Source: Thalia democratica (taxonomy: Eukaryota). From it: a DNA stretch of 64,000 nucleotides. The translations under genes were made by a program, and so were the position numbers. Below, one piece after another: positions 8,233-42,825 of this stretch (position 1 is its first letter; every line of letters starts with the position of its first letter). A model generated the notes under the pieces. It had not been told where the DNA came from and ran no database searches. It saw only the letters and a list, made by a program, of their open reading frames with translations. The stretch is taken from the NCBI GenBank assembly GCA_965202585.1, contig OZ241828.1:23436001-23500000 (forward strand), read 5' to 3'.

Positions 8233-9596
8233 TTGAAACGTTTTAAATAAAATATTAAAACTATTGGTTAAATACAGTGTGAGTTACTTGGTATTATAAT
8301 ATTTAAGTAAAAACTGCAAGTTTTAAGGCTATGTGGACTGCATATTAACTTGAATTTCAAAACACACAAAATTTAATGTACAACTTTGGTAAATATAAGA
8401 TAAAGGTTTGTGTATTAGCAATGTAAAAAAGACATATTAAAGTAATTCTACACAGAGTTCTATTAGAAAAAATAACTGAGAAAGTTAATTCTTTAATTAG
8501 AAGCTATACAAAAAAAGATGTTTCATCATATGGAAACACATTTACACAAAACGATTTTTGATAAAAAGAAAAATTGTTAAGTTATAAAACCACACAGATA
8601 GATAGAACCATAATAAATGTTATATTATTTTCAAAACATCAACATTACAAATGCTGATATATTACAAATTATGATTAAAAATTACCACTGTAGTATTTAA
8701 ACATGATTTTTGATATTTATAAAAGGCAAATCAAAAGTTCATTGAAAAAAGTTCATTATATAAAATTCAAACTTGAAAGGACACTTTGTGAAAAGATTAC
8801 TCTGATAAAAAATAATATCAAAAAAAAATTAAAAAGTGTGTTAAAAATAACACATATATAGTTTGGCATAAATTGTTTAGTACATTAGTAAATATTACAC
8901 TAGAAACTTTATATACTTATTCTATAAAAAATAATAAGACTAAATGAATAAACTATAAAACAATTATAAACAAGGCAAAATAAAACTAGCAGTTAAACAT
9001 TAAAACTATCATGTTCAAAGTATGCTAAATATTAATACATAATGATCTTCTCATAATTAAAACGTGCAAATAAAATTTAGACGGATTACAGCTTATTAAT
9101 TAAAACTAAAATATGTGAAAGATTTTTAAACAACTAAGTTTGTTTTACACTGCTACATATAAACTGGTTCTTTCAAAAAAATTAAGTGATTTTTCAAAAG
9201 CTGTACAGAAAAAAGTAAAAAATAAACTTAACGTAGGGGTTTTGTTCGATAAAGCTTACATAATTAGATTCAAACAAAATATAAAGTTTGTTAATGAACA
9301 TTTATGCTTCAAATGATTTATGAAAGTTCAATAAAGTTGTAAACAGCTTTGTATTTTACAAATAAACTAACATAACACTCAAAATGTTTGAAAATCCATA
9401 ACTTAGTTAAAAATAAATTTCAAAGTAAATAATGTACTGCAAATGTCCCAGACTTTACACGCAAAAATGTTCCATATTTACATTTCCCATTCATGAATAG
9501 GAGATACTGGCTTCAATCAAATATCTGATGAACAAAATCGAAATGTCTTATATACAGTATATATACAGGATGGACAAAAATCTTCAAACTTTCTCT

Positions 9597-12500
9597 CTAG
9601 AAAATCCTGTTATCAGCATACCTATCCAACTTGCACTTTCTTCTGAATTCCTGACCTCTTTCGTGAATCCATTTGTTTCCCACCCACTTGATACCTTTAT
9701 AAAAATATTATATTTAGTATAGCAAAGGATTGTTGAATATAACTTTTAAACCAGTTATTATAGTTGTATTCATAAAATTTTAACACACTAACAATCACTT
9801 AAAACCTGTCAGTATTAAAATTTTGTACTTGTGTTAAAACATCATATATTACTGTTACATCAATATGATATTGTTACATTATAAATCACTTTATATATAT
9901 GCCAGTAAAACTATACTAATATGTTATTATATTGCATAATACTAAATCTGTTAATACAATTATTTTAATATTTTATTTTAGTTTTAAATTGATAAACTTG
10001 TAAAAAGAAAAATATCAAACTAATATTATATTATTTATCAAATACCTGTCAATACTGGGCAAGCAGCATGTCTTGTTCTCATATCTCCTTTGCCATTAGG
10101 ATACAAATTGTACCAAAATACTGCTGAACCTGTTTAAATTAAAATTTGTTTAGATTATATTTATTTTTATCAATTTGCGTTATTGTTCTTCATTTATAAT
10201 ACTAATCTTGTAATATTTCTCTGATTTGCACTAAATTTATTTTTTTTTATTTGAAGCAATCTAATAATCTAATTTAACTATTTAAGTTAAAACTTCATAC
10301 CAATTTTTTACCAAGTGTTACAAAATATATCAACTCTGTATTATTTTCATTTGTTCAAAATTTAATCTTAAATGCAATTATTTTTCTCCACTTCTTGTTT
10401 ATCAAATTTTTTTTAAATATATTTTCTTATCTCAAATGTAACTAATAATTTTCACCTTTCACGGGCCTTGCAGCGATTTGAGGTGTAAGAAACACAGTTG
10501 AACCTCCGTATTTAATATCAGTGAAATAAAATAAAAATGTTGCGATCCTGTTTCCTATTTCTTCATCGAACTGGCCTGCATCCGTTTCTCTGTATAAAAT
10601 ATTCAATTTAAATGTTTTTTTTCCTAAAAAAAATACACTAGATATTTTCTCATTGTTGCCATACTTGGTAAGTTAATTATTCCATGAAATACTAATACAT
10701 TGAGTACTTTACGAATTATTTATATCGCATCTAACCAAAAAAAACTTGTATAAGCCTTACGCTTACCTTTACTTGGTCGACTTTAATAATTAAAATTAAA
10801 AAATAATAATTAATTAACCTTGCATGTAATAGTGAGGTTTGTAACATCCAATTATTGAAAATATCAAGATACTTAAAAAATTGAATTTAATTGAAATATT
10901 ATCAAAATTATATATTAAAGCTTTTATTTCCCATAATACACTGTGATTCATACTATCCACCAAATCCATAGTTAATAAAATTACAAGTTATAAAAAAGTG
11001 AAAACAATAAATTAATTTTTATCTTGTCATAAACAACTAATGTCTGAATTAAAACACAAACATATATGTGTCAGCCATATAATGAGGCTCACACTGTCCA
11101 CAAATACCATAAATACTACAAATATAAAGAAAAAAAAACTAAATTAAAATATCTAAAAAAGAATTGCAATATCTACCTTGCCATATCGTAATGTGGTTCA
11201 TACTGTCCACCAATACCGTAGTTAGCAATCTGAAGATCTTCTGCTGTCTCCATAGTAAGTCCTGTTTAATAAATTTAATTTCTAAAAACATTTAAAATCA
11301 TTTTAACTTATTTCAACTTTTCATTTAAAAGTGTTATTTAATATTAAACTTGCGGATAATAATACGAATAATGGTATATTTTATTCTCAGACACACTCTC
11401 ACAAAAATAATATATCAAGATACAATCCTATCATGTTGGAAGTTAAATCATATTTATCATAATAATATTTTATCATATTCAAACCTGTTATGTCTTCAAT
11501 ACGTTGGCACACTCTCTTTACAACTTTGTCATCGTGATCTTTTAACCATGCTGACTTGCTAACACGATAATCAGCACTCTCAAGTACTCCTGTTTGTTTA
11601 TTTATCAGTTAGTTACAACTGTGTCTTATCAAATACAATTTACTTATCCGCAGTCTGCAAAAAACTCTAGAACTCATGTGGTGGTTGTAATATTAAAAGT
11701 TTCATTATATGCACAAAACAACTAGTCTACTTATAATAAAAAGATGCACACTTTTACCAAGTTATAAACTCAAATTTTATGGTTTATATGTCTTTTTGGA
11801 AAACCAGCTTTTTAAAATTTTAAACTTGATTTTGAAGAATTCGAAAATAAACCCATCTTACAAAAATACAAGGAAAAATTGTTAAAAAAAGATTTGTTTT
11901 TAATATTTACAAACAAACCTGTCAACGGGTTCTGAACGGTCGCTCTGTACAGTTTTGGTTTAGCAAGTCTCTGGATTACTTTTATTTCACTGTCGCTTAT
12001 GACGTCATAAAACCTGACGATGTGAGGAGAAGGGTACATCTCCTCCATCTTAATTGGAGAAATTATTAATCTGTTTATAAAAATTTAATCTCAGTTATAA
12101 AAAAACACTAAGATATTATTTTCTATGTACATTAAATAAAAATAATATCAAACCTTTTATAATTACACAAATTTAATCAATGGCGTCTAAACTATTATAA
12201 ATAAATTTAAGTTTTTCCTACTTTGATGGGAGAAAGTATTAATCAGTTTATAACAATTTAGATGCCAACAATATTTTATTAAATTGAAACAAGTAGAAAG
12301 AGGATAAAGTTAGTCTAGGTGTTATAATACAATATTTGGTTAATAATGAACTTGGGTTTATAGTTGATATGAAAAAGATTTTTTAAGTAGATTAAAACAT
12401 AAATTTATTTACAAATGTTAAGAGACAAAATAATAACATTCTATTCACGTGAAAGTAGTTTTATGTTGGCTTATTGCCAATCCTCCAGTAGAAGCACTTC

Positions 12501-15500
12501 TACTTTCTCTAAATAATCACAACCAAAACTATTGATAAATGTTTATTAGATTAGTATTACCTTGGTTGATTGCCGTTGGTCCAGTAGTAACACTTCAACT
12601 TCCTTTCTACTTTCTTCTTAAGTTCCGGTTGAACCCTGCACAGTCTCTCGTAGTTACCTATTAAATATAATTAAATAACAATAACAATAAATACAGCTTC
12701 TTGTAATTGCTTAATTAAATATAATTAATAATTATCATTGTAATGCAATGAACTAATTCAGGTTTCTAATTTATATAGATATATTAATTTTAAAAGTTAC
12801 TAAATACTTAAAAATACAGCCTAGCTAAATAATTATTAACGAGTCTTTTGTAATTTACCAAGTACGATTAACAGTTGTTAATTAGATTTTTTCAAAATAT
12901 AAAATACAATTCAAAATATAATTATAATAATTATGACTTGTGATAATAATTATTGATGCAATTACCAAGTTTAAACTAATAGATAGAAAAATATATGACA
13001 TATAAAATTTAATGAATAGTAATTACCAAGTTCAGGTCTCTTGGCGGGCCCATCCTGCCCAGAAAGGTAAACTTCGTCTTGTCTCGAAAGAACTGATTCA
13101 CCCCTGCGGTTGCTGCCCAGTAGTTTCTGGAAGTACCTGTTTGGATTAGGAGTTATTATTAAAGTTATTTTATGTATTCAATGTTTTATGAAATGAAATG
13201 AAAATCAAATGTTTATACTAAAATGTACAATTTTTATTAATAGAATATAAGTACTAATGTTTCTAAAATGTTAAGAGCTATGTCAAGTAGTTTCTAAAAG
13301 TACCTTTTGAAAAGATTAAGTAATAACTAAATGCATTGAATAAAGCTTATGTAAACGATATATGAAATATAATATATGTTTGTTTAATGACATATTATGG
13401 TTGAAAACTTTTGTACAAAATACTCAATGTTTTTTTCATGTAATTACTTATTACTGCTTAAATGTAATATTTATATGTTTAATAAGACACATTATAAGGC
13501 GTCTACACCGTCTTAAAAGTTTCTTGAAGTATATGCTTTAACTTTAACGTTTGGATTTTAAATAAAAGTTAAAAGTTTACTTAATTTATTTTTACCTGTA
13601 TATGTTTAGTATAAGTTAAATTACGCTCACTAGTTTTGCTATTTTTTCTTATTTTGTCTTACCTGTATGACAAAAAGATATACTTAAAACTAATTATTAA
13701 TATGAAAACTTTAAAAAAAGTACTGTTTATTATTTCAAAATACCTGTAATTTCCCTGAATCCTAGCATCGGAAGGATCAATGTCCATCATTTTAGTCGTG
13801 ATATCCATGGCTCTCTTCAGATTACCAGTTCTTGAAAGACAGTACGATAAATGGTCCATCACATCGAATTTCGTGAAGTAAGTGTACTCCTTTTCGTCCA
13901 TACTCAGTGTTTGGGACATCCAAACCTTTGAAAATTGGTTAAGTTGGTAAGTAATCTTAAGTGGAAAAAAGTATATTGCTTAACCAAACGGGAAAGTGTT
14001 ATAAAACATTGAAAAAAATTTAAAAACTTACAATTGTTAGAAAAAAAAAGTATTTTTTAACAAAATAATTCTATTATAAATCAAACATTTGGACTATTAA
14101 GTGTACATCAAGCCTTAAACATTTATTATGACAATTTTAAATTTTTTTTGCTAAATCTGTGTGTTAAAAAATTAAAAATTTTTTAGTACATATTAAACAC
14201 AATACAGTAAGAACTAAAAACTTATTATACTATTTTAAACACACTATATTGTAATTTAAGGCCATAGGGGGGTAAAACACTTGACTTATATTTACAAAAT
14301 TTAACTTTGACTTTTATATGAAAGCTTTAATTACAAAATATATCCCAGTTTTTATAGAATTTGAAAATATCATTCAAATTTTCAGATATTTTTTTTACAA
14401 AAAGTTTTCAATACAAATGTAGGAACCCAGATTTTTTGGGGTCAATTTTCTCAGAAATTTTAAAAACCACTAAAAATCTATCTCCTCCTTCATTTTTCAA
14501 ACAATCTTCTTCAAATTTTCAGAAAATGTTCCTTACATTATAAGAAAAAAATGTTACTTATGAATTTTGATAATTTAAAATATTAAAAATTTTATGGCAA
14601 AAACTTAAGGAAAAGGTACTTTTGTGGCAAAAAAAAAATTTTTACTTAAATTTTTTTAAATTCACAAAGAAAGTTTTTTGGTATTGTATAAAGATTAGAC
14701 TGTGAAAGTTTGAAGAATATTGCTTAAAAAATGTAGGAGGAGATAGATTTTAAACAAAATAGTCTTTATTTGCTGTTTTAGTTTTCGCTTCCTATAGAGA
14801 ACCTATTATGCGGCCTGACTTTGACTGGTCATATCTCAAAAATTAATTCGAATTTTTAAAACCATAAAAAGTAACTTAAAGCTTAGAAAAAATCTATAAA
14901 ATAAGATCAACTAGTAAACCATGGCTACCCCTCTATGGCCTTAAATTTCAAAATGAGTTATTCCTATCACAATCAAACCAACCTTGCAGTGATAGTAGTC
15001 TTTAGCCAGGTACGACTCCCTGCCAATGTAGTAGCAATCTTCAGCTGAAAGGGACTGGTTTGACAGCTGTCCTTTTATGTTGCCGCTTGCGAACATTTTG
15101 GTGTCCAGTTTGTATGTGTCCTGCAACCTTAACAAGGCCATGGCAGAACCTTTCAAGTCGTTCTCACCTGGTAAAAAATACGTTTTTATAAAATAGATAC
15201 AAGGGTTTTCCATTAACAAAAAAAACTTACTTACTTGAGCGAAATGACAAAGATGAATTTAAATTACTGTTATTATTAATATAAAAAAAAATCTTAATCA
15301 ATCAAAATTGAGACATTAACAATTTTTAGGAACTGCTTACTTCTTCAGTTCTAAAACTGTATCTTATTTAATGTATAAAGTATAATTTTATTTTTTAATG
15401 AGTTTCTGGTATTCACATGTGAATGTTAAAGCATGAGGTTTTTAGATAAATGATTAAAAACTGTCAAATCAAAACTGACCTGGAAAGTTAGCCTTCCTAG

Positions 15501-17440
15501 AGTTGAAAAGCTCCATGAACTCCTGGCTGTTGTCTGCATTGACCTGATTAAATATTAAATAGTTTTTATTAGTTTTATAAAGTAAAACTATTTTAAAAAT
15601 TTAACATCTATACCTATTGTATATACCTTTCAGAAATATAAATTCACAAATTGTAGTTGTTTACTCAAGTGTGTTTTATTTTCGTTTTTTAATCAAAAGA
15701 TTAAAGCTTGGTATTCTTTTAAAAATGTTATGAAAAGATTAAAAGTTGAAATATAGTAATTTTTGTTTCAATTTAAACAAATAACTATTATTTAGAATAG
15801 TGGGCAAACTTATACTATATTTTTTTAATAACTTAAATTATTTTTAAAATTAAACTTAAACAAGAATTAAATTCTTACATTAGTAACGGCTTATTTGTGT
15901 AATTAATATTTTTAGTTACAAGTAAGATACTTATCAAATTAAAGAACAAAACAATCATTAAAAATAAAACAAACTAGCTTTAAGATCAATAAGTTTCTTA
16001 ACTATTTATATCTACTTTTATGTTCAACTTTTATTACATACATTTTCCCAGTTTTTACTTTTTATAAACTAGATAAATATACGACTAATCTGAAATTACT
16101 TTAACAAAAGAAGTTCGAATACGCATAATTTTTATATTTACATTAGCATTACATTGTGCTTTTTACACAAGTATTAAAATGAGTTCAAATGGTTTTGATG
16201 AAAGTTCATATTGAATGCAAATAGATTTGATATCTACCTGATCTAATACAAATTTATAAAAAATTAGTTTAGTAATCATTATAAGCCTTATAAAAATATT
16301 TTGAATAAACTTGCTTGGTTTTTAATTAACTTTCATAATAGTTATATATCTTATATGGCAGGGCAGACAAACTGCGGCCCCTCGGTCACAATCATAACTT
16401 TATTTGAAATAACTAAAATCAATAAAGTTTTTTTTATAAATTTTTCAAAAATTTATGTAACCTTTTTAAAGTATGTATACCACAAACAACTTTTTCTTAA
16501 AAACCTTGTTAGCTTTTATTTTATAACATTTTAAACTATTAGTTTTGGAGGCTACCTATTATAAACAGTGAACTTTTTTTTAATTCCTTATGTATCTATT
16601 TTTGTTAATATACATCATACTTTTAAAATACTATTAATATAGATATTATAAAATATTTAATAATATAAACATTCATAAAGATCTTACTTGATCTTCCAAT
16701 TGACTCCATTCATACCCCATCCTCTTGATCAACCTGAACTGGTTGATGGGGTGACTCAGGTACTTATCAACATCCAACTCAGCCTGGTTGTTCACCTGGT
16801 ATGTGTATAACTTTGGAAAAAGTGTTATTTTGTTTAAACTTAATTTTACTTTAATACTTTTAACACTTTATCACTTTAAATATTTGGTTTAATACTTTAT
16901 AGACAAATCACAGCAACATACTATACATGATGCAAAAAACATAAGTAAACCACTTTTTGTTTTACATTTTTAGCACTATAATAATTCTAATAGTATACCA
17001 TTTATAAATTATATAAATAAATACATAGACCTACTAATATAATCTTATACTTATAAAAAGTAGAATCACTAGACATAGAAACTTTTATCAACATAACAAA
17101 AATTTTACATTTTACAATATGTTTCATTGAAGGCAACAATTATATAACAAACTTTTATACTTTATGGTAATATAAACTCTTTCAAGTATAAGCCTCATTA
17201 GACTTAAAAGAGTCTTAAAAACAACAAAATGCAACTCACTTGTTCAAACTGATTGAGTGCGTTCTTGATATTATCCAATCTTTTCTCTTCCGCTTGCAAG
17301 TAATCTTCCAAGTTCTTCACCAGGTCCTGCTCGTTCTTCAACAGCTCCTCCATGACACCAAGTGACGAAAACCACTCCTTGGTGGCTGAACATGTGAGAG
17401 TGGTGAGTGAATATACGAACAGGAACAGAAGAGCTTTCAT
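9597..17440 (-). CDS. P4HA: Prolyl 4-hydroxylase alpha subunit (collagen P4H-alpha), 13 coding exons, 534 aa
   Basis: Exons 17440-17240, 16795-16688, 15543-15480, 15167-14983, 13925-13744, 13136-13027, 12657-12561, 12070-11919, 11589-11485, 11261-11177, 10589-10456, 10129-10046, 9694-9597 join in frame (1605 nt). Features: signal peptide, YLSHPINQFRLIKR, ALLRLQDTYKLD, YRVSKSAWL, catalytic GGQYEPHYD (HxD), TRHAACPVL (distal His), KWVGNKWIHERGQEFRRKC (2-oxoglutarate Lys). Vertebrate paralog number cannot be assigned. Confidence 0.96.
14260..14940. mobile_element. Complete TTAA-flanked MITE with GG...CC termini (Kolobok-like) in P4HA intron 4
   Basis: TTAA|GGCCATAGGGGGGTA ... TACCCCTCTATGGCC|TTAA: terminal inverted repeats, TTAA on both sides, internal inverted motif AATCTATCTCCTCCT / AGGAGGAGATAGATT. 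Superfamily is inferred from TTAA plus RR...YY termini. Confidence 0.8.
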
Positions 17441-19346: not shown

Positions 19347-20975
19347 ATCTAGAGTGCTTCTGCATGTGTGTTTTGTTTGTGTTGAAATTTGATTCATGTT
19401 ATTTGGGCATCAGATTGTGATGTGTTGGTCTTTTATTTTATGAATTTCCTGGTAATAAAAGAGTGATTGTTATAAGTTATTGAAATAAATTTTACTTATT
19501 GTTAATTAATTTTATTTGTTGTGTTTTCTTTATTGCGCTAAATTTAAGATAAATTATTTTATTCATTTAAACTTTTATTTTATTAGAAAATTAGAGGTAA
19601 AAGTATAAAGTTAATAAAATCTTTTTATTTTTTATTATTTTAGTTTTACATCAGGTTAAATACTAACCAGTTTATATACTATATATATATATTATATATA
19701 TAATTATTGTCTTGTCGACATATAAAAAAGCTTCTTTTAAAACACAACAAAGTTTGAAGCATTTTATAGTCAATTAACTGTTGTTTTTGTTAATTTTAGT
19801 TGTTTAATTAGTTAGAAGGTAGATCGATTTTTGTACTGAATATTTGTAATGTACAATATTACGCCATACTGTTTTTTGTTTTTTTGCATAACTTTTGTAT
19901 CTTTGTTTAGTACAGTGCTTTGTATTTTGAATTTAACTGGCTGATGATCAAAGCTTTATGAAAAATTAAAGCTTTGTGAAACATATGTTCCAGTATTTTT
20001 AAAATCGCCATTTGAATAAATTATTTAAAAGCCCTTCAAGTGGGCTCAGTTGAAAGTGTTTACGTTTAAACATTAACCTTATTTTATATATTATATATTA
20101 TATATAAATATAATACTTATTATTGTTTTTTTTTCAAATACAAGCAGTATTTCTTTATTCTAGTTTTTTTTTCAAATAGAAATTAATACTTTCAATTAGA
20201 TACTGGTTTATTTGAGTTTGCAACAGCTGATTGTGAGTTCACACTGGTGGCAGTGATCACATGATTGGATTGTTAATGTGTTTTTTGTTGTAGCAAATAC
20301 TTTCTTGGGGATTTGAGCTTTATGATTTTCCCACACTTTGTGTTTTTTTGTGTTGAGATTTTAACCTTGTGATTGTTTTCCAAATGACTTGTCACCGGAG
20401 GTTTTTCAATAAATGCTTAGGACTAGTTTTTAGTTTCATTTTGGTTGGTCAAAAATAAAAATTCTACTTTTCATTTTGTTTATCGATAGATATAGTTTTA
20501 TTTTCCATTAAAGTGTTAATTTTTTTTTGATAAATTCAAAGATATGGCAGGTGGAATAACATATGATGAGCTCAAATTCACTCATTGACCTTCAGAAAAC
20601 GTTTATCATTGCAGAGAAGAGAGTGAGTTAAGATATTTTTCTACCTTAAAAAGTTTTATGTTTCTAAATTAAATAAATTCATGCATTAAAACAATTTAAA
20701 TATTACTAATAGACTAAAATAAAAATTTGAAAAGATTGTTTAAAAAATTAAGGAGAAAATAGATTTTTAATGAAACAGAGTTTTTTTCTTTTTTGGTTTT
20801 AGCCTTCCATAAGGAACCTATTGAGGTCATCAACTTTGATCCCTTATAAATCAAAATTTACTTTAAATTTTTAAGCAGTAAAAAGAGTCTGATGGCAAAG
20901 ATTAAACTCTAAAAAATAATATTAACTTATAAAATCAATTTATTTCCCCATGCTCTTTAAGCCTGATACTAAATA

Positions 20976-21691
20976 CAGGGTTGCCACTCAATTTTTCAAT
21001 TTTTTTACCAGGTTTTCCAAATTTCTTCTAGGTTTCAAAAGTACACATTTCTGGGTGTATTTTAAGTTGAAAGTTAATTTTAAGGTAAGAAACTGTGTTA
21101 AATAGTATAAAAACATTGAAAAGATACTGTAAAGCTACTTCAAATATGTATTTTAATAATAAAAAAATTATGATGACCTAAATTTTTTATTTATATGAAA
21201 GAAAGAAAAATGTGAATGCTCACAACTATGGTTGATGGATTGGTGTGGAGAAAAATCTTTTGGATCATCACACCATATACATTAACTTTTTTTTTGAGCA
21301 GTTTTAACTAAAACAATAAAAAGAAACTTAAGATCAACAAAAAATCAAAATTATCATTAATATAGAATATGATAAATTTTTAGATTCAAATAGAAATTTT
21401 ACTACTGAAATTGTGCACCTAAAGGCGGTGGACTACATAGTGTGTTGACAAAAGCTTGAATTTTGCTTGATTCACGCATACACCGGTTTGATTCCCAGTC
21501 AAACCTCCCGGTCTAACAAGCTATCAAATCAACACATTATAACAAATCAATCTTCAGTACTGAACAAGTTAAAATGTTAAATAATCCAGGTTTTTTTCGA
21601 GATACCTCAAATTCAAGGTTTCTTTAGATTTTTTTGCCTAAATTGTCAAATTACAGGTTTTTCCAGGTTTCCAAGTAAAGTTGCAACCCTG
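20976..21691. mobile_element. hAT-like MITE family A (CAGGGTTGCC termini), opposite orientation, with extra internal sequence
   Basis: CAGGGTTGCCAC ... GTTGCAACCCTG; internal CCAGGTTTT motifs are the reverse of the AAAACCTGG motifs in the 27.8-33.1 kb copies; about twice their length. Confidence 0.7.
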
Positions 21692-22638
21692 TAAATGTAC
21701 AGAAAAAGAATAAACGAATTACACAAAAACAAAACTATGATAACGTGAAACTTCGAATTTGTCCAGGGAGTTTTAGTATAAAATATTTTACTTTACTTTA
21801 AATTAACAATCAAATCTACAAAGTTAACTATAAATCTTGTTCAACTTTCACAGTAATATTTTTATGTGCTAAAAAATGAAACAAACTTGCTGTTTGCTTC
21901 TTGAACATTTAACCAAGAAGCTTGTCAAGAAGAATCTGTTTTTGTCAATCTGGCTTTCTTTAACTAAAAAATTTTTTTCTGAATATGACACAGAATAGAG
22001 ATATATGGACCGACTATTTAGATAAATAAGTAGTGTGTATTAGGGCGCTTACAAAAACAGTAAGCTCTTAAATTTTCAGCTCATAAACCTGTGCAAAATT
22101 GCAGATGGTTTGACAAAACTTTTATGCTAGCAAAATATGATTTTCTGAAAACCTCCCCAATGCAAACTGTATGCGACGCAAAAAAAAACAGACTTTGAAG
22201 TTTTTGCTGGAAGTTTTTTTCACATGACAAAATTTTTACACGAGGTACTTCTTGATTTTATGTAGCTTTTATCAAAATTGTAAGTTTACAGTAGTTTCCA
22301 GTTTTTTTTCTTTTAGTAATAAAGATAAAAAATTAAAACCACAATGTACGAGTATAATAACCAATTTACAACTGAATGTAGTAGACACATAAACACAAAA
22401 CTTACTAACAAATGCAATGTATTTTAATCTGCATTTAGAAAATTTATTATTATTAGTTATCTTTCTGCTTGACTAGTTATGTGCATAACTTTTATAACAT
22501 TAAGGCTTCGTGATAAGGGTATTTTTTATTGGTTGTAGAAATATTTATTAGAAGGGTAAAATAATTCGGTTTGAGATTAAAGTAAGCGAATAAAAGATGC
22601 TCAACTAGATCTGTAAAAGTAGAAAAACATAACTTCAG

Positions 22639-23609
22639 TTTTTAGGTTTTTTTTTTGCAAAATTTACTTATAGTTTAACTCTCTTAACTACTGCCCAAGG
22701 TTTTGAGGAGGAAGAAGGGAAGATCCTGCTGAAAGACTTGCATGTCCTCACTTTACACGAGAGTCAAATGACCACTAGAAGAAGAATTTCACCCGTGCCA
22801 CAACTGAACTGTGTTGGAGGTAATGAGAAATTTAAAAATTATATTTTGAAGTCAGTTATTTTTACTTGTACTAATTTTAAATAGTTTATTTTAATTAATG
22901 ATTAATTCTTTTGATCATTGAACTTTTAAACATTTTGATAATCTAATTCAATCTTGATCCAAACTTAAAGAAACTAGATATATGTTTATTTGATACTTTC
23001 TTTTAAGTTATCTTTTTTCTATTTCTGTTTCAAAAAATTTTGTTTTCAGTTTTTTTTCATGAAACTACAAACTCTCTGTTCTTTTAAGTTAAGCAAGTTG
23101 AAATTGGCAGTATTAATAACAACTGTTTCTTAAAAGTCTAAACTAAGCTATTTGTGTTAACTTAGTTTACTAGTTTTAAGCAATTAAATACTAACAAAAT
23201 TCTTAGATGATGCACAATCCAAACGCTCGCTCCACCCAAAAGTGGTCCAGTGCACCAACAAACTACAAACAAATTATTTGTAGTCAATTGCTAAAATTTA
23301 ATAGCTAACTTATTGATGATTTAACAGTACAATAATAATCCCAATACCAATTTTTCAGGCAGTGCTAGATACGAAAAACTCCACCCAAAACACGTCCAAT
23401 GCACCAACAAGGGTTTCAACGTACAGGACTTTCATTTGGAATGTAAAGCAGACATGTCAGACAATTTTAGATTCGGAATGATCAGTGTCACCTGCAAGGG
23501 ATATGATCACCCAAATGATGATTACATGCTTGCTGGATCTTGCGGGCTGAACTACAATCTTGAGTTCACCGAGAAAGGAAAGGAACTTGTCAAAGATATA
23601 AACTATTGA
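22639..23609 (+). pseudogene. Truncated SARAF duplicate (luminal domain only); pseudogene or short soluble paralog
   Basis: Exon A (~22639/22678-22819: TLLTTAQGFEEEEGKILLKDLHVLTLHESQMTTRRRISPVPQLNCVG) and exon B (23359-23609: GSARYEKLHPKHVQCTNKGFNVQDFHLECKADMSDNFRFGMISVTCKGYDHPNDDYMLAGSCGLNYNLEFTEKGKELVKDINY*). Same phase-1 intron as SARAF, with homologous intron 3' sequence. No in-frame ATG in exon A. Confidence 0.85.
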
Positions 23610-24143
23610 AAATTACTTCCTTACTCTAATATTGTTCAGGAGGTGTTTAAAATAGTTCTTGATAGTTTTATTTATCTAATCGGCAAAATGTAAGAAGTTC
23701 TTTACATAAGTTAAATAAACATTTAGATAAATAACTACACGTAAGTAAACTTAAAATTACCTTACACCAGACTTGTTATCTTGGAAAGATAACTAAGTCT
23801 AGCTGTTTTTGGGGATTTGCCAAGGGAAATTTAAATCTCTCATTCAAAGGCAAAAAATACATAACTCCATAATATATTAAATAAACATATGAAAATAATT
23901 TTTAAAAAAGTAAATAAAAACCATGTTAATTATTATATTACGTTTTTTAAAGTTTATTTTATTATTTCCTAACTAAGCTTTTTAAATCTTGTTTTAACAA
24001 TTTAATTTTTCGGTCCTTTTTTCATTAAAAATCAGTAAAAAGGTCTAATACTAACAACTATTTTATAAATTAGTCAAACTTCGCAGATATGTTGTTAAAC
24101 GTACAGTTATTTATCCTTTTGTTTTTTTTTGTATTATCTAATG

Positions 24144-24624
24144 CAGTGATCGTTAAGGTGTACACTGGTGCTCGCTAGTGTACACGAAACTTTTTTTTGG
24201 GGTGCACGAAACTTTGAGATCACAAAAAAAATACATAGAGTTAGATTGAGTATGTAGTTCATATTTGATAAAGTACTTAAAGAACACTGAACTGGGGATT
24301 TTGTAGTAATTGCGGACTGCGGAGAAGTGTTCAATTACAAGTTTGTAAGACAAAGCCATATAACAAAAATATTATTAAGAAAATAAGGTAAAACAACTAA
24401 AGAGGTCAATTAAATATAGGATCAAATAAAAAATTTCAGCTTCAGTTGTTAAAGGTTTGCATGTAAATACAAACTGAGTTATGGCTTTTACGGATAAATG
24501 CACTAATAAAAGTGTTTACGTAGTCCCACCACTAGCAACGCTTATTAAAACTAGATCTTGGGGTCACCAATTTTAATTTTTGTAGCTTGGTGTACCCAGA
24601 ATATGATTAGCTTGACGACCACTG
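24144..24624. mobile_element. hAT-like MITE family C (CAGTGGTCGTCAAG-type termini)
   Basis: CAGTGATCGTTAAG ... CTTGACGACCACTG with a perfect 8-bp target-site duplication ATCTAATG. Confidence 0.9.
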
Positions 24625-27600
24625 ATCTAATGTGTTGAAATTTTTATGACTATCGGAACTTTACCCTTAGTATAAATATTTGTTTGCTTTTATCAAAGTA
24701 TAAACCATTACATAAAGTACTCTAACATTTCTATAATAATAGTATTCAAATTTTGCAAACATGTTGTTAAATGTACAGTCATGAATTTATTTCTTTTATT
24801 GTACTATGTAGTACATTACAAAGGTTAAAACTGTTTCTACTTTCCCTTATAAAATATATATTTTATCCAGATTGATTTGGTCTAGTTATAAAAGACTATA
24901 AATTTTAAAAAGTATAAAACTTGGAATCCTTTTTAGTTTAACAATAATTTTAATAAAGCTTCATATTTTTGCATAGAAATGTTTTGAATTAAAGTTACTT
25001 TAGAGAATAAAAAAACTTACTTAAACTGCTGTTTTCAGTTTCAAGATAAAGTATAGTCTTACACTGACTATGCTATTGTTTTAGGTTTCGTAAAAAAGCG
25101 ATTAAAAATGATTGGATTTTTTTATACTAGCAAACACTCGTAAATTACTATCATGTCTAGATAGCGCTAAAAAATAAAGATTTAATGTATTTTGAAATAA
25201 TAAGTAATTTTTTGTCTTATACATAATGTTAAACTAGAAAATAAGTTATATTCTAAACACTATAGGTTTGTTTTCAAGGAAGCTTTTTGTCTTAAAAACC
25301 CTATATTATCGTTATCAAATTATACGAAACTAATAAATACAAAAAAAAAAAGCAAAAATCTAAAACAACAACTGAAGTCAAAAGTATGTTATATTTCAAA
25401 TTTTGAAACTCTCATTAATTTTTTTTTCAAGCAATTAAAAAACAGCCATTACACCGCATTCTTTGGACCGAGTTGAAAAGTTTACTTTAAGTTAATTGAT
25501 ATATTTTTTGATGCGCAGTTTTACACTAACAACACAGATTTAGATTAAGAACAAAGAAAATTTTTTACTTTATGTTTCAAAACTAGAAAAATTTTCAAAA
25601 ATTATTCGTATTAAAAACTTAATTGTCTTTATAGTTTTTTTTATATTAGGATGAAAGTATTGTAAGAAAAAAAATTTAGTTAGTAAGTTGAATAGTTTTA
25701 TACAAACTTTTAAGTTTTTTATTACGTAACTGCTTTGTAATTTATAAATAGTTTGCTTAAATATCACAAACTACTCGGCATTAATTTTTTACTTGTTCTT
25801 GTAACATTTAATATTTAACTAGTGTTTCTGAACTCTTTCTTTTAGCTTTTATCATTTTCCAAATATTTCTCATTTTGGCTAGGTATAAAGTTTACAGCTT
25901 ATCAATTTAATTATAAATTAACTCTATTTTGAAAGCATTGCTAAACTTCTTTAAAAATAAGCTATACGAAAAGTAATAAATAAAAATGTTTAAAACTTTA
26001 ATTCTAATTAATAGATTTAAGATAGTTCTAGCTTTAAGAGTTCGTTTGGAAATTGTAGCATTAAAGTTGTAATAGATCAAATTCTATTAACAAACTTTTA
26101 ATAACAAATAGTGTTCGGAATGTTTCGATAAAAATTAATTTTAAAGTAACAATAGTTTTTAATAAATACTACGTGCTCTTCTGTTTTAAAAGAGATACAA
26201 ACTACAAAGTTTCAAGATATTTTTCGACAACAAAAAACGTAATAACAAAAATTAACTTAAGCGTTTCTAATATTAAAATCCTAAAACAAAAATTTTACGT
26301 GCTACACTTTTAATCTAACAAGTTATTTTTTGAGCAATAATTGACGTACATTCAAACCAAACATATTATGATTTTTTTAGCATATTAGCAAGATTTTTCT
26401 TACAAAGTGATCATACAATTACTAGAGCACAAAATGTATAGTTTTAGCGAACAGTTACTTATAAGTAGTCAGAAATAATTTTATCTAATATCTTCTTAGT
26501 TTGCAGAATGCAAGTAGTATCGCAATTTTGACCTGTATAAAAAGACTAAACTTAACAAAAACGATAAACTTTTTGGATGTATAAATATATATCCATAAAG
26601 TTTATTGCAAAAAGAACGTAATCTAAAGATTATTTCTTGCAAAAATTAATTAATTTCTCCTTTAACTAAATGGAGTTTAAGTAACTTAATTTATTTATAT
26701 AACCATTCTTTATATAATATCACGGTTACCATTACTTTTTTAATATCTTTTTTATTAAAAGATTAAAAGCTAAACTTGAGTTAGTTTAATTAAGCAGTTA
26801 AAAATTTTATACATTCATATATAATAAAAGATGTTGTAAATAATAAATTACATTATGTTTTATAGTTTAAACTTTAATCAAAGTACAAAAGTAAACTTTC
26901 GAAAGAAAAAAAAATGCATATTTAAAAAACAAACAAAATCTAAGGTTGAAGAATGTATAAATGTTTTCAAAACTAGTATTTTCAACAGAGCTAAAGAAGC
27001 ATTTAAAATAAAATTCAGTAAATATAAAAACATATAGACAGCTTGTTTATTACTTGAATAGAATAGAAGTAGTTTTTATTGAACGACAAAAATATCAAAT
27101 AAAGAATGACGTGTACTTTATAATAGAAAAGATGACGTGTACAATTGTCAAGTCCAAGTTATAAAAAAGTAATACCGATACATTATTCATGTAGGTATCG
27201 CGATATAAATTTTTTATAGTTAAGTAAGACTAATGACACTTTTTATTCAAAAAAAAAAGACTGACTAAGTGATTTTTATTGTTAAATATATTGAAAGTTT
27301 ATATTGACATTATCATTATAAGCCATATAATCTTCTTTTGTTTATAAATGTTCTATTAACTCATGATTTCAAATACTACAAAAGAGTGGAAAAATCTAGT
27401 AAGTTCTTAACAAAAATGTATTAATTTAGATACAAAAATGTGTTTAAAAAAAAGTTGGTTCATTGAATATATAAAATAGCATAAGAATATTTTTTGGTTA
27501 AGATTAAAGCAGACTCATAAGTTTTTAAGTTCCACTTTAATAAAAAAACAAAAATCAGATTTTTTTAACTCCTTTAAGTTCTAATCCTATAATGTTGAAT

Positions 27601-27803
27601 AGAAATGATGTATTTTTTGTTAAGTTATATTGATCTTGACATTACTATAATGATATTTAATTTATGCTTTAAAGTTATTGTTTTTACTTTAAAAAGAGTG
27701 TGACTTTTCATATTTTAGAAATATTTATGTTTTATACATTACCACAAGTTAAATTGTTTAATTTTATCAACTAATGTTTCAATAAAAAAAAATCTCATCT
27801 GTA

Positions 27804-28145
27804 CATAGTTGCCACTTTACCTGGAAACCTGGAATTTGACAATTTAGGCAAAAAAACCTGGAAAAACCTAGAATTTTAAACAATTTTTACATGTTAAGTA
27901 GAACAATTTTGATTTAACATAAAAACTCTACCAAGTAGATAAAAAAATTTTGCCATCATTTTTTATTTTTTAAACACAGTTGAAGCTCTACAGTATCTTT
28001 TCAATGTTTTTATACTATTTAACACAGTTTTTTACATTAAACTCATGTTTAATCTCAAAATAGATTAAAAAACAAATACTTTTAAAAACCTGGAAAAAAT
28101 TTTGAAAACCTAGATAAAATTTGCCAAAATTCAGTGGCAACCCTG
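27804..28145. mobile_element. hAT-like MITE family A
   Basis: CATAGTTGCCACTTTACCTGGAAACCTGG ... GTGGCAACCCTG; TCTGTA is present in both flanks; aligns with 32301-32684. Confidence 0.8.
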
Positions 28146-29238
28146 TCTGTATTAATAAAAAGGTTTGGACTAAGTTAGTCAACTTAAGATATTTTGACCT
28201 GTTTGAAGTTTTTAAAACTCATGCTAGTTAGAAATTTTCTAAAAAAAATTCTTACTGACTCAGGCTTGTTGGTTTTATTATTGCTAAACTAAAATAGTTT
28301 TGATAATTACCTAGTATGTTTTTGAACCAATTTTGAGCTGAAATTACATAGTTAGCCTAATATTAATGTTTAAATTAAATTTCTTTTTAACCATATTTTC
28401 ATACTTTTTGTACCCCCTCTAATTCAAAAACTTGATTAAATTTAGAAAAAAAATAAATTTGTGTTTACTTTTAGGTTGGTTTATACTTAAAAATATAAAA
28501 CAAATTGCAAAAAAAAGCATAACATACTTATAATCTTTACTAATTATTTACTTTATTACTTAACTTACAATTATATTAACTACTAATGTATTTATACAGC
28601 TTGTTTAATTTAAAGTATTGTTTTAGACTAAACATATTATGGTTAATAAAGAAATTAAATGAAAATATTGATATAAGACTAACTACATAATTTTAGCTCA
28701 ATACTGGTGGGACATCATGCTAAGTAACTACCCTAATTTTGAAATTTTTCCTTGATATCAGCTGTTGTATTAAGTTTGATTATTTTTCCTAGAAAATTGT
28801 GTTTTTTTTAACATATTTTGTCATTGTTTTGGTATTTTTAGGTATTTAATTTTGTTAATTGAATTTTTCAGTTTTTTACACTTGAAATTATTTTCTTCAA
28901 TTTTAAAATAAATTCTGGCTGAATCAGTTTGGTGGGCTGTTTTTTAGCCACTCAGGATGAATTTTTGCTCTTAAGAGTGGTTGCCTTTTAAAATAAAGTA
29001 TAAACTACATAACCAATATCAAAAATATAGATCTAGTTTGATATAAAATTTAAAAATTTCAATACTTTGGGTAACAAGATTATGACAAGCTACAATTATA
29101 AGAAGACCAAGTAAACCTACCCATTTGGTATTTTCAGTTTGGTAAACCCACTTTCATTGGTATTTTAACAGGGGTGGCTGTTTTAAATCAATCTTATTTT
29201 TATACCCCAGTTATCAGAAATTTTTTACCACTTGGTTT

Positions 29239-29619: not shown

Positions 29620-29942
29620 CAGGGTTGCCAAAAAACCTGGAGTTTGAGAAATTTTGAAATAAAACTTTGAAAAACCTGGAATTTTAAACAACTTTTACAT
29701 GTTAAGTAGTAAAATTTTGATTTGACATGAAAAATCTGTCATAATAACAAATTTTTTTGTCATCATCAAACATTTTTTTATCAAAAAACACATTTAAAGT
29801 AGCTTTACAGTATCTTTTCAATATTTTTGTACTATTAAACACAGTTTTTTACCTTGAACTTAATTTAAAACTATAAATAAATCCTAAAATGTGTAATTTT
29901 AGAAACCTTGAGAAAATTTGCCAAAAAAATTTGGCAACCCTG
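29620..29942. mobile_element. hAT-like MITE family A
   Basis: CAGGGTTGCCAAAAAACCTGG ... TTGGCAACCCTG with conserved internal sequence. Confidence 0.8.
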
Positions 29943-30758
29943 GAAAAAAAAAGAAAAAAGTTTCTTTGTAACAGAGAATGACTGTGACATCATTTGTTAA
30001 ACACTCAAAAGGTGCCAAATTTGCCAAATTTAAAGTAGCATTACAGTATATTCTAAGTATAATATAATTTCAAGACCTTGAGTTTAATTGTCTGCTAAAA
30101 ATATTCAAAAAACTGTGAATAACCTCAAAACTTGAAATAAATAATTTTAAATAAATTAATTTTGAAAATCTTAAATTTCACAAAACCTTGAAAAAATCTT
30201 TAAAAAACTCTTGATATCTCTCTAGTTGCAAAGCACTCAAACTATTAAAAGATAGAAAAAAAATCATCTGAATTAGGTTAGCATGATGTAACTCAGATTA
30301 ATTTTTGCTCACTCAGGCTATCAATAGACTGGTGGTGGAAAGGCATTTTATTCATCAAGCTACACACAATTTGCTTGTTAATACTGTTTTGAACTGTTTT
30401 TATTTTAATAATAATAAAATAAAAACTACAAGATAATAATTATTTTTTAATATTTTTTCTTAAAAACTCCTTTTGTTTAGCTATTTTGTTAATGTTTAGT
30501 GTTTTAGGTATAAAGTTTGATAAACATTATTTTTACAGTTGTTGCCTTATACTATTATATATTTTTCTTATGGTTGTTCTTGGTCAATTAGATAGGTTTT
30601 TTGTTTGTCTTTGAGTGTACTCTAGTTCAAAATATATATCATAAAGATTTGTTTGCAAGTCTTGTCCAAGGTTGCTTAGTTATAAAATTCATTATTGCTT
30701 GAAAATCTTGCGTCAGAAGAGTAAATAGAGCTAACATATATTGTAGTCAACAGTTTTT

Positions 30759-31116: not shown

Positions 31117-32300
31117 ACTTGTTATAAATTTAATGTAGCATTAGAGTAAAACCTATACTATTTTCAAAAAACCGCAAAGCATAATGGCAGTAATGAACTT
31201 GAAATCACTTATAGTTTATTAAAAATTCTACAAATACATAAAGTATTGATTTTCAACAAAAATAGTCTGTATTTACTATTATAATTGAAAATTATTATTG
31301 ATTAACTTTAAATACAAAAAAAAACTCTGCCTTTCTACTATGACTTATTTTTATTCACAAAAACATTTTAATATATACTTATTTGTTTTTTAATTTCTAT
31401 TTTCGACTATATATGTTTAATACTTAAAATAGTATTTTAGTTTTTACATTTGGCTGGGTAACATTTTAAATTTGGATAGCTTGAATGATTTTAAATAATT
31501 TCTTTAAAAAAGTAATAATTAATCTTTTTAAAATTATTATCTTAGTTAGGTTGAGACTCTGGTAAAACTACAATATTTTCAATTTAAGTTTGTTGTAAAA
31601 TACAGCCAAAAAATATTTTAAACTTTACTTCTTTTTTAATCTGTTTGGTAGCTGTTTTGATATATTTTTCTATTAATTTTCAATAAATTTTAAGATTTTA
31701 TTTTATTATCCTTATTAATTGGCACTTTTGGTACATTTTTATGTATTTTAATCAAATTTCTGTTATATTGTCCCTAAAACTCTTATTATTATTCTCATAG
31801 GTGTGCAATGTTTTTCTGTTTTAAACTATATAGTGGTATTCAGAAAATCAGTTGAATACTAATTCATTTCTTTTTTGTATCTGTAATTTGTAAGTTACAA
31901 AAGTGTGAATTTTTGAATAGGTTAAAAATAGATATTTGATATTTATATTTTAGTCAATAACTTTTTTGTTAATTTGATTCTCTTCTAAAGTTTTCTGACT
32001 TTATAAGTTTACTTAAAAATCTAAATAACAAAAATCCAAATTAAATGTATCTGTATATTTTGAAACAAGTTGAATTATAATTACTTGTACTTGGAGTTTA
32101 AATTGTTTAATTACTAATATTGCCACACACTCAAGCTACTCAGGATAAACTCAAGGTTTTTTTCTAGATCTCATTAGATTATTTCTTACCAAGGAACATT
32201 TTTTCAAAGCCCAGGCTAGTTTAACTGTTAAGTCAACCTCAAACTAGGGATTAATTTGTTTTAACTATCAATGAAAGTCAAACTGGTTTTCATACTAACC

Positions 32301-32684
32301 CAGGGTTGCCACTTTACCTTGAAACCTGGAAAACCTGTAATTCCACAATTTAAGCAAAAATAACCTAGAAAAACCTGGAATTTGAGAAATTTTGGAAAAA
32401 ACCTGGAATTTTAATTAATATAAACATTTTCAGTAGTAAAATTTCGATTTGGCACAAGAAATCTATCATATAGGTGAGATTTTTTGTCATCATCAAATTA
32501 AAAAAAAAAACATATTTAAAGTAACTCTAAAGTATCTTTTCAGTGTTTTTATACTATTTAACACAGTTTCTTATAAAAAAAATAAACTTAAAACTAAAAA
32601 TAGACCCAAAAATGTGTACTTTTAAAAACCTGGAAGAAATTTGGAAAACCTTGAAGAATTTTGAAAAAACGAGTGGCAACCCTG
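32301..32684. mobile_element. hAT-like MITE family A, best-preserved copy
   Basis: CAGGGTTGCCAC ... GTGGCAACCCTG with a perfect 8-bp target-site duplication TACTAACC. Confidence 0.92.
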
Positions 32685-32790
32685 TACTAACCCTATAAAT
32701 TTAAGTTTCAGAATTTATACCGTAAAGTAGTTATGTGTAAATCTATGGTAAAAATCATGTTTCTCACAATTTTCATTTGTTTAAATTTTG

Positions 32791-33145
32791 CAGGGTTGCC
32801 ATTTTACCTGGAAACCTGGAATGTGAAAATTTATGCAAAAAAAAATCTGGAGAAAACCAGAATTTTGAACAATTTTAACATTTTAAGTAGTAAAGTTTTA
32901 ATTTGACACAAAAAATCTATTATATAAATAATATTTTTTTGTCATTATCAAAAAAGTTTTTAATAAAAAAACACATTTAAAGTAACTTGACAGTATGTTT
33001 ACGATGATTTTTTAGTATCTAACACAGTTTCTTACATTAAACTTAACTTAAATCTAAAAATAAACCCAATAATGTATACTTTTAAAAACCTTGAAGAAAT
33101 TTGAAAAACCTGGAAGAATTTTTGATAACACAAATGGCAACCCTG
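32791..33145. mobile_element. hAT-like MITE family A immediately upstream of SARAF
   Basis: CAGGGTTGCCAT ... ATGGCAACCCTG; ends 124 nt before the SARAF ATG. Confidence 0.85.
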
Positions 33146-33268
33146 TTTTTTGTAAAAGTATAAATAATTTTAAGCTGGTTATATTATAGTGGTTTGATAA
33201 GAGCTGTATGATGTTTAAGACAGTATATATTAATTTCATTTATTTTTTAGAATTTTTATATAAAAATT

Positions 33269-34565
33269 ATGTGGAAATCCATAGTAACCTTTCTACTACT
33301 CACCACACTTTTCACAACCACCCACGGTTGGGGTGAGAAGAAAATCAAACTGAAAGACGTGCATGTACTCACATTGCACGAGGGTCAGATGACCACCGGA
33401 AGGAGAAGTTCACCTGTGCCTCAACTGAACTGCGTTGGAGGTAAAGATTTTTAACTATTTTAATTGGTTTTATAATTTTTTTTAATAAAAAACTGCTCAG
33501 TATACAAAGTGTTTGTTCAAAGAGGTTGCTAGTTTGTGATATTGTTTAAAAACTACTCTGTTTAAAATTAAACATTGCTAGTTTTATATACAGAACTATC
33601 AACTGAAGTTTTTTATAAGTAATTTATTATTATAAATAGAAAGTTAACTTGAATGAACTTTAATCTAAAGCAAATAATTTGGAGTCAAGTGCCAAAATTT
33701 TATAGCTAATTTATTGCAAACAAATTGTAAAAGCTTTTAATAATTTGTTGGGTCATAGTACAATATTAATCCCAATATTTTTTTTTCAGGCAGTGCTAGG
33801 TATGAAAAACTCCACCCCAAACACGTCCAATGCACCAACAAGGGTTTTGACGGTCAGGACTTCCAGTGGGAGTGCAAAGCAGACATGTCAGACAATGTCA
33901 GGTTCGGAATGATCAGTGTCAGCTGTGAAGGGTATGATCACCCAAATGATGACTATGTACTTGCTGGTTCTTGTGGACTGAACTACAATCTTGAATTCAC
34001 TGAAGCAGGCAAGAAGAGGCAGCATCAGCAAAGCTCTTTCTACCACGGCAACAGTTACCATAGCGACTACAGCTACCAGGACTCATGGTTCTTCTCCTTC
34101 TTTGATGCCATCTCTGGTTTGGTTCCAATCTTTCTCATCTTGGGAGTTTTTCTTTTGATCATCAACTGCTGCACCACTGACCAATCAGATTCCACTGACA
34201 GAAGACCAGGTCACGACTTCAGAGACGGAGGCAGAGGGGGTCACAACCCGCCGCCTTACGGTTGGAAGTTCCAGGACAGCCAGCAACAGTATCAGCCCCC
34301 ACCTAGCTACCAGCAGTCAACCCAACAAAACACTGGTAACCAAGGCAACACAGGAAGCTGGTTTCCAAGCTTTGCCACAGGGGCAGGATTGGGCTACCTG
34401 TTTGGAAGCAGCGGAACCAGAAACAGGGGCTGGGGGTCAAGGACTTACACGGGTTATGACGGGTTCGGGGGCAGGACTGGTGGTTGGGGAAGAAGCAGGT
34501 CTTCATCCAGGGGCAGCGGAACTTCGAGGCAAACCAGTGGGTTTGGGGGAACCACCAGGAGGTAG
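33269..34565 (+). CDS. SARAF: Store-operated calcium entry-associated regulatory factor (TMEM66), 2 coding exons, 315 aa
   Basis: Exons 33269-33440 and 33790-34565 (948 nt). Signal peptide; LTLHEGQMTTGRRSSPVPQLNCVGG; VQCTNKGFDGQDFQWECKADM; SCEGYDHPNDDYVLAGSCGLNYNLEFT; TM helix LVPIFLILGVFLLII; PPPY motifs; C-terminal GATGAGLGYLFG and TSRQTSGFGGTTRR typical of SARAF. Confidence 0.96.
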
Positions 34566-37500: not shown

Positions 37501-37619
37501 TTAAAAAAATAATTTTAACTGCATTTCAAAGAAAACTACATGGAAGATAACTAACTACCATTTTTTTAACATGTTTGTCAAAGTTTGTAGATTTTTCAAA
37601 GATATCTGACAATTTTACA

Positions 37620-41800: not shown

Positions 41801-42182
41801 ATAACATTGATCAAGCAATAAACAATATCGTTAGCAAAGATAAAAAAGTTAACAGTATTTAGTAACAATTAAATAAAACTTAGAAAAATAAATAGTTATG
41901 GTTGAATATGCTTGGTATCATATATTTTTCATTAATTTGATTGAAATTTACCTTGATTCATTCTCAGTTGTATTGTTTGTATTTTGTGTCAGTTGTAAGT
42001 ATAACAGTTTACTAAAATGTTTTTACTTGTTTTGAAAACATACTTCATGAATGAAAGTTTTTATTTAGTTTAAACATAAAATGACTCTTAGTTTGATAAC
42101 CTTTGACAATTTACAAGACTATTATAAAAAAAAAATATAGGTTTACTTGAATTAAACATATCAAAACTACTGTTGTTTAAAT

Positions 42183-42471
42183 CAGTGGTCTTCAACTTTT
42201 TTAAAAAGCTGTGCACACTAATTAACTGGAAAACAAATTCTGTGCACACTTGACTGTAAAAAATATGTAAATATTATTGAAGAATACTCTTTTTTATGTT
42301 TTGAGATCCTTATTATATAAATAGCGGTTTGATGACTGTAATTTTATGCTACAATTAGTTTTTTATTCCCGTAGAAAAGACAAAACAAATATCATCTAGA
42401 AAAATTTTTTTACCTTATTAAATTTTCTGTGCACAGTAAAATAATTTCCATTCACACTTTGACGACCACTG
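42183..42471. mobile_element. hAT-like MITE family C
   Basis: CAGTGGTCTTCAAC ... TTGACGACCACTG; flanks GTTTAAAT / GTTTAAGT (7/8 target-site duplication). Confidence 0.85.
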
Positions 42472-42825
42472 GTTTAAGTTATGCGTGCTTAAAAATTGTA
42501 TGTGCAAGCTAACACTTAAATGTTTTATTGTTTTATTTAAATTGGAACGTGTTATTGCAAATATCATCTGTTGATGTTAAATTAGCTTTAAACAGATATA
42601 GATGAAAATATTATAAAATAGTATTTATTGTGAACGTTCTCTCCTATGTGGTATTTATCTGCTGTAGAACAAAAACCTTTAACCCCAACTTTAACAAACA
42701 AGTAATAAAACAGCATTTTGTAAATTGAAGTTCCGACAATAGGGAAACTTTATTACAGTAGTGAAGTTATTTTGATTTTAAGTTCGGAATTGACTTAGAT
42801 TTTTAGTGTAAAACTTAAGTTTTAA

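Follow-up and report, generated by a model that had tools for sequence, protein, structure and literature searches.

Does a SARAF copy that keeps only the luminal domain represent a working gene or the remains of a dead one? SARAF (TMEM66; PF06682) is an ER-membrane regulator of store-operated Ca2+ entry. In the planktonic tunicate Thalia democratica, a partial copy of SARAF lies 10 kb upstream of the full-length gene, within a 64-kb stretch of DNA (approximately 24% GC) that was analyzed as a whole and is referred to here as the window. The original prediction allowed for a soluble luminal protein that could modulate calcium entry and for a simple pseudogene. The results described below make a gene that died recently more probable than a functioning soluble regulator.

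Structure and surroundings of the SARAF copy

The parent SARAF is an intact two-exon gene on the plus strand, encoding 315 amino acids (PF06682, E = 5.9e-51; 115 homologues). Exon 1 (33269–33440) carries the ATG and encodes the signal peptide and the beginning of the luminal domain. Exon 2 (33790–34565) supplies the remainder of that domain, followed by the TM helix and a tail rich in Gly, Ser, and Pro with GFGGTTRR at its end. The partial copy, also on the plus strand, occupies 22633–22819 and 23359–23609 and has its counterpart in the parent at 33269–33440 and 33790–34013; its DNA was 83 to 85% identical to exon 1 and to the 5' 224 nt of exon 2 of the parent. The repeat search of the 64-kb window paired 22719–22826 with 33340–33447 (83%) and 23326–23582 with 33757–34013 (85%). 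The Pfam SARAF profile PF06682 matched the exon 1' peptide at E = 4.5e-13 (profile positions 18–53) and the exon 2' peptide at E = 1e-28 (101 bits, cut-off 30.8; profile positions 62–134), and exon 2' matched PDB 6O2U, the human SARAF luminal domain, at E = 1.3e-19. The repeat pairs and Pfam matches confirm the predicted DNA-level duplicate of SARAF 10 kb upstream of the gene. Only two SARAF luminal-domain loci, the copy and the parent, were found in the genome, and the copy locus was covered by unique-depth contigs in two DNA runs from a single sample.

Exon 1' of the copy (22633–22819, plus strand) has an open frame from 22633 and starts with a Met-less, signal-peptide-like hydrophobic stretch, LQFLGFFFAKFTYSLTLLTTAQG. 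Its homology to parent exon 1 was clear at approximately 22710–22819, with similarity at the protein level from approximately 22663. The copy intron (22820–23358, plus strand) is a GT..AG intron of 539 nt, compared with 349 nt in the parent; both splice sites are kept (donor GT at 22820, acceptor AG at 23357–58), and the phase is 1, like that of the parent. The two introns could be aligned only over their last 85 to 100 nt, the remainder having been reshaped by large indels. Exon 2' (23359–23609, plus strand) encodes the luminal domain up to LEFTEKGK. Its homology to the parent stops at 23582 and is followed by eight unrelated codons and a TGA at 23607–09; the predicted distance of eight codons holds when counted from the last homologous residue, K, and the stop lies nine codons past LEFTEKG. 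The TM helix and cytosolic tail are lost, as had been proposed, and the 3' 58% of the SARAF coding sequence is missing from the copy. A tblastn search with the C-terminal 185 amino acids of the parent found no remnant of this part elsewhere in the 64-kb window.

Across the 106 codons aligned between copy and parent, there were no stops, no frameshifts, and no indels, and the frame of the copy was intact through 145 codons spanning the retained intron. All five cysteines of the parent SARAF domain were present, and the copy was 77.5% identical to the neighboring full-length SARAF over the shared region. The predicted retention of the intron, both splice sites, the five cysteines, and the open frame was borne out over these 106 codons. 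Among the haplotypes seen in the reads, which differed at 23347–23369, no variant disabling the copy was observed. The second haplotype carried a 1-nt deletion in the polypyrimidine tract at 23347 and, in its coding part, only a synonymous T>C at 23363 and a GA>AG at 23368–69 that exchanges Arg for Lys conservatively; the sole change in a third read contig at the locus was A>G at 23369.

The copy intron itself contains a third version of SARAF sequence, a decayed mini-copy that corresponds to the beginning of exon 2 (23230–23261, plus strand; 88% identical to copy exon 2). The region around it (23200–23262) corresponds to the first approximately 19 codons of SARAF exon 2 behind an AG and reads DDAQSKRSLHPKVVQCTNK before it diverges and runs into stops. 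In the SARAF frame, it gives ..SLHPKVVQCTNK, with the VV and CAG states of more distant SARAFs. The extra codon, Val-Val, and CAG are as in distant SARAFs (L004), and CTC CAC CCA AAA is common to the copy and the parent, so the mini-copy may predate the split between these two. It was not seen in the introns of the parent SARAF or of L003, the closest public relative of the parent.

High-copy MITE-like repeats were found at 21000–21800, 24082–24750, 27800–28160, 29630–29960, and 32300–33166, with a summed contig depth of 10^4 to 10^6 compared with approximately 50 in unique DNA. They flank a unique 2.3-kb block that carries the copy and also occur just upstream of the parent SARAF, and such repeats could have driven the duplication. 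The window also carries, at 5386–17440, a minus-strand gene for prolyl 4-hydroxylase alpha (first coding exon, 17204–17440). The motif agagctttcatgttt occurs at 17430 and 18014, on both sides of an internally repetitive, GC-richer block of approximately 570 nt, which may be an insertion with duplicated flanks. Downstream of SARAF, 35000–54000 is a long gene-poor stretch of 19 to 23% GC, and GC-richer, exon-like blocks resume at 60755–63748. The Rfam search of the 64-kb window gave no match.

The missing start codon and the spliced leader

As read from the sequence, the 5' tract of the copy (22630–22674, plus strand) begins with an in-frame TAA at 22630–32 and continues into a T-rich tract that includes three AG dinucleotides and lacks an ATG. 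If used as acceptors, these AGs would give exon starts at 22639, 22646, or 22674. No in-frame ATG, GTG, or TTG was found between the TAA and a TTG at 22738. The first in-frame ATG is at 22768, within the domain, and is preceded by an out-of-frame ATG at 22742; the reported absence of a start codon was upheld. The hydrophobic stretch at the 5' end of the copy is in frame, ends AQG, and resembles the parent signal peptide in hydropathy. In the parent, the ATG lies 18 nt past an acceptor-like AG at the equivalent place.

A Ciona-type spliced leader, ATTCTATTTGAATAAG, was present in the genome. The 16-nt leader followed by GT had more than 100 exact genome matches, and with up to two mismatches there were 2650 matches, compared with 442 for the reversed control. 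This leader ends ..GAATAAG and contains no AUG, which rules it out as a source of the start codon. The exact matches with GT on contig C26 (7129, 22214, 37299, 52384, and onward) recur mostly at intervals of 15,085 nt, and others are clustered on C4 at 80.16–80.42 Mb; they look like SL RNA genes inside long tandem repeats. In the 2.6 kb scanned upstream of the copy for ATG exons with a strong donor and a compatible phase, no credible start exon was found. The sole upstream candidate with a strong donor (20950–21084) was rejected, as it lies in a high-copy repeat and would encode an implausible N-terminus.

Age of the duplication and selection on the copy

The closest public relative of the parent SARAF was L003, a 2.8-kb metagenome contig from Tara Oceans sample run ERR1726819 that is colinear with 33145–35034 and 81% identical over 1967 nt, whole intron included. 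At third codon positions, 25 changes were specific to the copy, compared with eight specific to the parent and 11 specific to L003; in the alignable part of the intron, the corresponding counts were nine, two, and seven. These counts suggest that the duplication probably occurred somewhat before the split from the L003 species, at approximately 1.5 to 2 times the age of that split under a clock. The two tree shapes were only 0.6 lnL units apart, so an older duplication is likely, not proven. The intron was rejected as a neutral yardstick because the approximately 85 columns that align are too few and too biased, probably representing the constrained branch-point and polypyrimidine part. The outgroup L004 was likewise rejected for polarization; its third positions are saturated (agreement 10 versus 11), so changes on the stem are not separable from those on the copy branch.

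In L003, which comes from the sister species, approximately three repeats of the 5' part of SARAF exon 1 precede the real exon within 287–780 (287–444 and 472–651, followed by the real exon region from L003:653). At L003:599, a repeat carries an ATG and a signal-peptide-like ORF, after which comes a strong donor (GTATGAGT). Traces of such exon 1 repeats in the window were weak and confined to 32685–32775.

Over the shared part of exon 2, 19 codons differed between copy and parent by synonymous changes only and nine differed in the amino acid, exactly as had been counted originally. In a maximum-likelihood branch codon model, the dN/dS of the copy branch was 0.115 to 0.18, compared with 0.06 to 0.08 on the other branches. 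Crude counts gave approximately 0.3 for the copy branch, and on this sample of 106 codons our crude omega is closer to 0.3 than to 0.15. A dN/dS of 1 on the copy branch was rejected on the tree with the copy as sister to the parent (2dlnL = 34) and on the older-duplication tree under a clock-type constraint, by which the copy branch is at least as long as the sister path (2dlnL = 26–36, p <= 3e-7). When the older-duplication tree was left unconstrained, dN/dS = 1 was not rejected (2dlnL = 1.7), with a copy branch approximately nine times shorter than the sister path. The proposed branch-specific dN/dS with an outgroup accordingly returned a value well under 1 and a rejection of neutrality, except on that unconstrained tree.

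Changes specific to the copy were distributed over codon positions 1, 2, and 3 as 9/5/25 (binomial p = 8e-5), and the skew persisted (p about 0.02) after a clock-sized share of the third-position changes was moved to the parent stem. An always-neutral copy would require a third-position rate approximately 3.7 times below that of the functional sister path (p = 0.001). The NG86 pairwise dS was 0.83, which is probably inflated, and 11 of 35 four-fold sites differed. Gene conversion was rejected as the source of the low dN because it would also have lowered the synonymous divergence. These analyses show, at the level of the codon comparisons, that purifying selection acted on the copy lineage, as a spliced protein-coding sequence, through most of its history; the past constraint inferred at the outset is strengthened, with neutrality since birth rejected on the copy branch. 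A two-phase model combining SARAF-like constraint with a period at omega = 1 fitted as well as a single omega and was best with 10% of the branch neutral (support 0–25%), with either order of the constrained and unconstrained phases compatible with the one sequence.

The amino-acid replacements were compared with an alignment of about 265 SARAF domains from two database searches. The 15 replacements in the copy fell on positions with a mean family conservation of 0.71, compared with 0.68 at unreplaced sites. In six functional relatives, 157 replacements had a mean conservation of 0.48 (Mann-Whitney p = 8e-5 against the copy), and each relative, with 22 to 32 differences from the parent, had a mean of 0.45 to 0.51. 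The copy had replaced two of the 11 invariant columns, whereas none of the 157 replacements in the relatives fell on such columns, and four of the 33 columns that are at least 90% conserved were replaced in the copy. The Trp of QWEC, found in 261 of 261 aligned domains, is Leu in the copy, and the Glu of CEGY, found in 263 of 263, is Lys. Four further replacements, including Gly>Val in GFDG, introduced residues unseen in 240 to 263 homologous domains. The changes of GFDG to GFNV and of QWEC to HLEC, noted earlier, were seen again in the codon alignment. Among the first- and second-position changes in the copy, 11 of 14 were G/C>A/T, the direction of the genome's mutation bias. With replacements that are random as to family conservation and biased by mutation, the copy appears to have lost SARAF-like constraint.

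Competing readings and comparison with known systems

We give about an even chance to the copy being a once-functional tandem SARAF paralogue that is now a young pseudogene with an unbroken frame. A segmental partial tandem duplication of SARAF would have taken place somewhat before the split from the Tara Oceans relative. For most of the time, as shown above, the copy lineage evolved as a spliced coding sequence on which purifying selection acted, so that it was once part of an expressed SARAF paralogue. Recent inactivation would have left the copy with no start codon, no TM helix or STIM-regulating tail, and mutation-biased replacements at invariant positions; we infer that a recent death explains why the ATG is gone, why invariant residues have changed, and why the replacements follow the mutation bias. 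The best-fit neutral phase amounts to about 15 substitutions in the ORF. Given a noncoding indel:substitution ratio of 17:217 and a stop-creating share of 5.2% of substitutions, the frame and splice sites would survive such a phase approximately 15% of the time, which is uncommon, not implausible. Against a young pseudogene, the ORF, splice sites, and five cysteines are intact, and the second haplotype adds only a synonymous change and a conservative R>K. Neofunctionalization, with an early relaxed burst and constraint regained afterward, has an equally good likelihood, and catching a long-maintained gene just after its death is a priori unlikely. A duplication breakpoint within exon 1 would mean that the parental ATG was never part of the copy and that a different 5' exon was used while the copy was constrained; that exon could still exist. 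The suggestion that the copy may simply be a pseudogene is, on balance, the better bet, with the amendment that for most of its life the copy was selected coding sequence.

An exon of this kind is the basis of the main alternative, a live luminal-only SARAF paralogue whose Met and signal-peptide start would come from an unrecognized upstream exon spliced to 22639, 22646, or 22674, which we regard as possible though doubtful. Its product would be a soluble ER or secreted domain with a diverged function; it might, for instance, serve the domain-swapping luminal domain of full-length SARAF as a partner or decoy. The low dN/dS of the copy branch and the rejection of dN/dS = 1 argue for a live gene, as do a 145-codon frame that stayed intact across an intron whose neutral parts became unalignable, the retention of the five cysteines and of the counterparts of the beta9-beta10 strands that human SARAF swaps, the hydrophobic stretch read in frame up to AQG, which resembles the parent signal peptide in hydropathy, the three AGs behind a T-rich tract as possible acceptors, and the second haplotype without a disabling variant. 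However, the copy has no ATG and no credible upstream exon in 2.6 kb, and the spliced leader has no AUG. With the invariant Trp and Glu replaced, the fold must tolerate changes that no other SARAF has, in addition to the four replacements to residues unseen in 240 to 263 domains, and the replacements as a whole are blind to conservation and mutation-biased. The C-terminus of the copy lacks a KDEL-type retention signal, and no homologue of similar architecture was found. A live gene accounts for the intact frame and cysteines; on this reading, the unusual replacements would date from a burst of change early on. We think it unlikely that the copy is a living soluble luminal-only gene with an unseen 5' exon in which the W>L and E>K changes reflect a new function, such as pairing with or capping the SARAF luminal domain and so tuning calcium entry. 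The proposed soluble modulator of calcium entry found no support, given the lack of a start and of an upstream exon, the lost invariant residues, and the conservation-blind replacements.

A partial duplication that never functioned and has drifted neutrally since birth would explain a copy that is cut off at both ends and has no start codon; the mini-copy at 23230–23261 is another small local exon duplication, and dN/dS = 1 is tolerated by the older-duplication tree when no clock constraint is applied (2dlnL = 1.7). That fit, however, demands the roughly nine times shorter copy branch, and under any clock-type constraint dN/dS = 1 is rejected (p <= 3e-7). The 9/5/25 codon-position counts (p = 8e-5) and the absence of indels in 106 codons next to an intron reshaped by indels also stand against a copy that never functioned, and we consider this origin improbable. 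We regard as more improbable still that the two exons are used in a longer transcription unit, by read-through into SARAF, in a chimeric transcript, or in a regulatory RNA. The copy lies on the same strand as SARAF, 10 kb upstream, and some public proteins contain two or three SARAF luminal domains (P0116–P0122), but exon 2' ends in a stop with no good donor near the end of homology, and no intron interrupts the parent exon 2 at the corresponding position. The preferred reading is that of a recently inactivated paralogue.

The luminal domain of human SARAF folds into a beta-sandwich of 10 strands, contains three disulfides, and dimerizes by a beta9-beta10 swap; it modulates channel inhibition and is not required for it, the work on STIM1 being performed by the cytosolic tail (PMC8391525). 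Compared with the human luminal structures (6O2U, 6O2V, and 6O2W), the copy encodes the whole luminal beta-sandwich region (profile positions 18–134). It keeps the five cysteines of its lineage and the C-terminal strands that swap in the human dimer, whereas the start codon, the TM helix, and the cytosolic STIM1-binding tail are all missing, and the family-invariant Trp and Glu have become Leu and Lys. What the copy retains is only the part of SARAF with the least-understood role.

Among related planktonic tunicates, short-tailed SARAF paralogues of 197 to 222 amino acids (P0006, P0008, and P0027) were found on environmental cDNA-like contigs, which indicates that SARAF has been duplicated repeatedly in this group and that paralogues with much-reduced tails are expressed. 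Unlike the copy, these proteins still begin with Met and a signal peptide, have a TM helix, end in GFGGT.RR, and carry Trp and Glu at the invariant positions, and the copy is nearest to its own neighboring SARAF (77.5%) and not to them (61–64%). In searches for an orthologue of the copy, the exon 2' protein search found no protein of 45 to 143 amino acids sharing words with it, the JGI metagenome scan found no relative, and a HMMER scan of 1.84 billion representatives returned ordinary SARAFs only, blanks that do not amount to absence. Short database entries that end just past the domain were rejected as luminal-only SARAFs, as they look like exon-bounded ORF fragments. No natural luminal-only SARAF was found in the public protein data searched, and no description of one was found in the literature searched. 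Some public proteins (P0116–P0122, P0151, P0184, and P0190) carry two or three tandem SARAF luminal domains before one TM helix; unless these are fused gene models, the luminal domain has been duplicated internally in other organisms.

A living copy would be the first SARAF known to occur naturally with the luminal domain alone, and a ready tool for testing the role of the poorly understood, domain-swapping luminal part. As a pseudogene, it would be ordinary, yet a clean case of a tandem paralogue that is past the loss of its start codon and before the break of its frame. A simple reading of dN/dS would label the copy functional, whereas the placement of its replacements argues otherwise. Like duplicated (non-processed) pseudogenes, the copy keeps its intron, lies in tandem 10 kb from its parent, is cut at the 3' side within an exon, and has no initiation codon, and its replacements are mutation-biased and blind to conservation. 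Unlike them, it has 145 codons without a frameshift or premature stop, and the dN/dS of its branch is 0.12 to 0.3 and not approximately 1. As a partial tandem duplicate, the copy is of a known kind, and its evolutionary signature is somewhat unusual.
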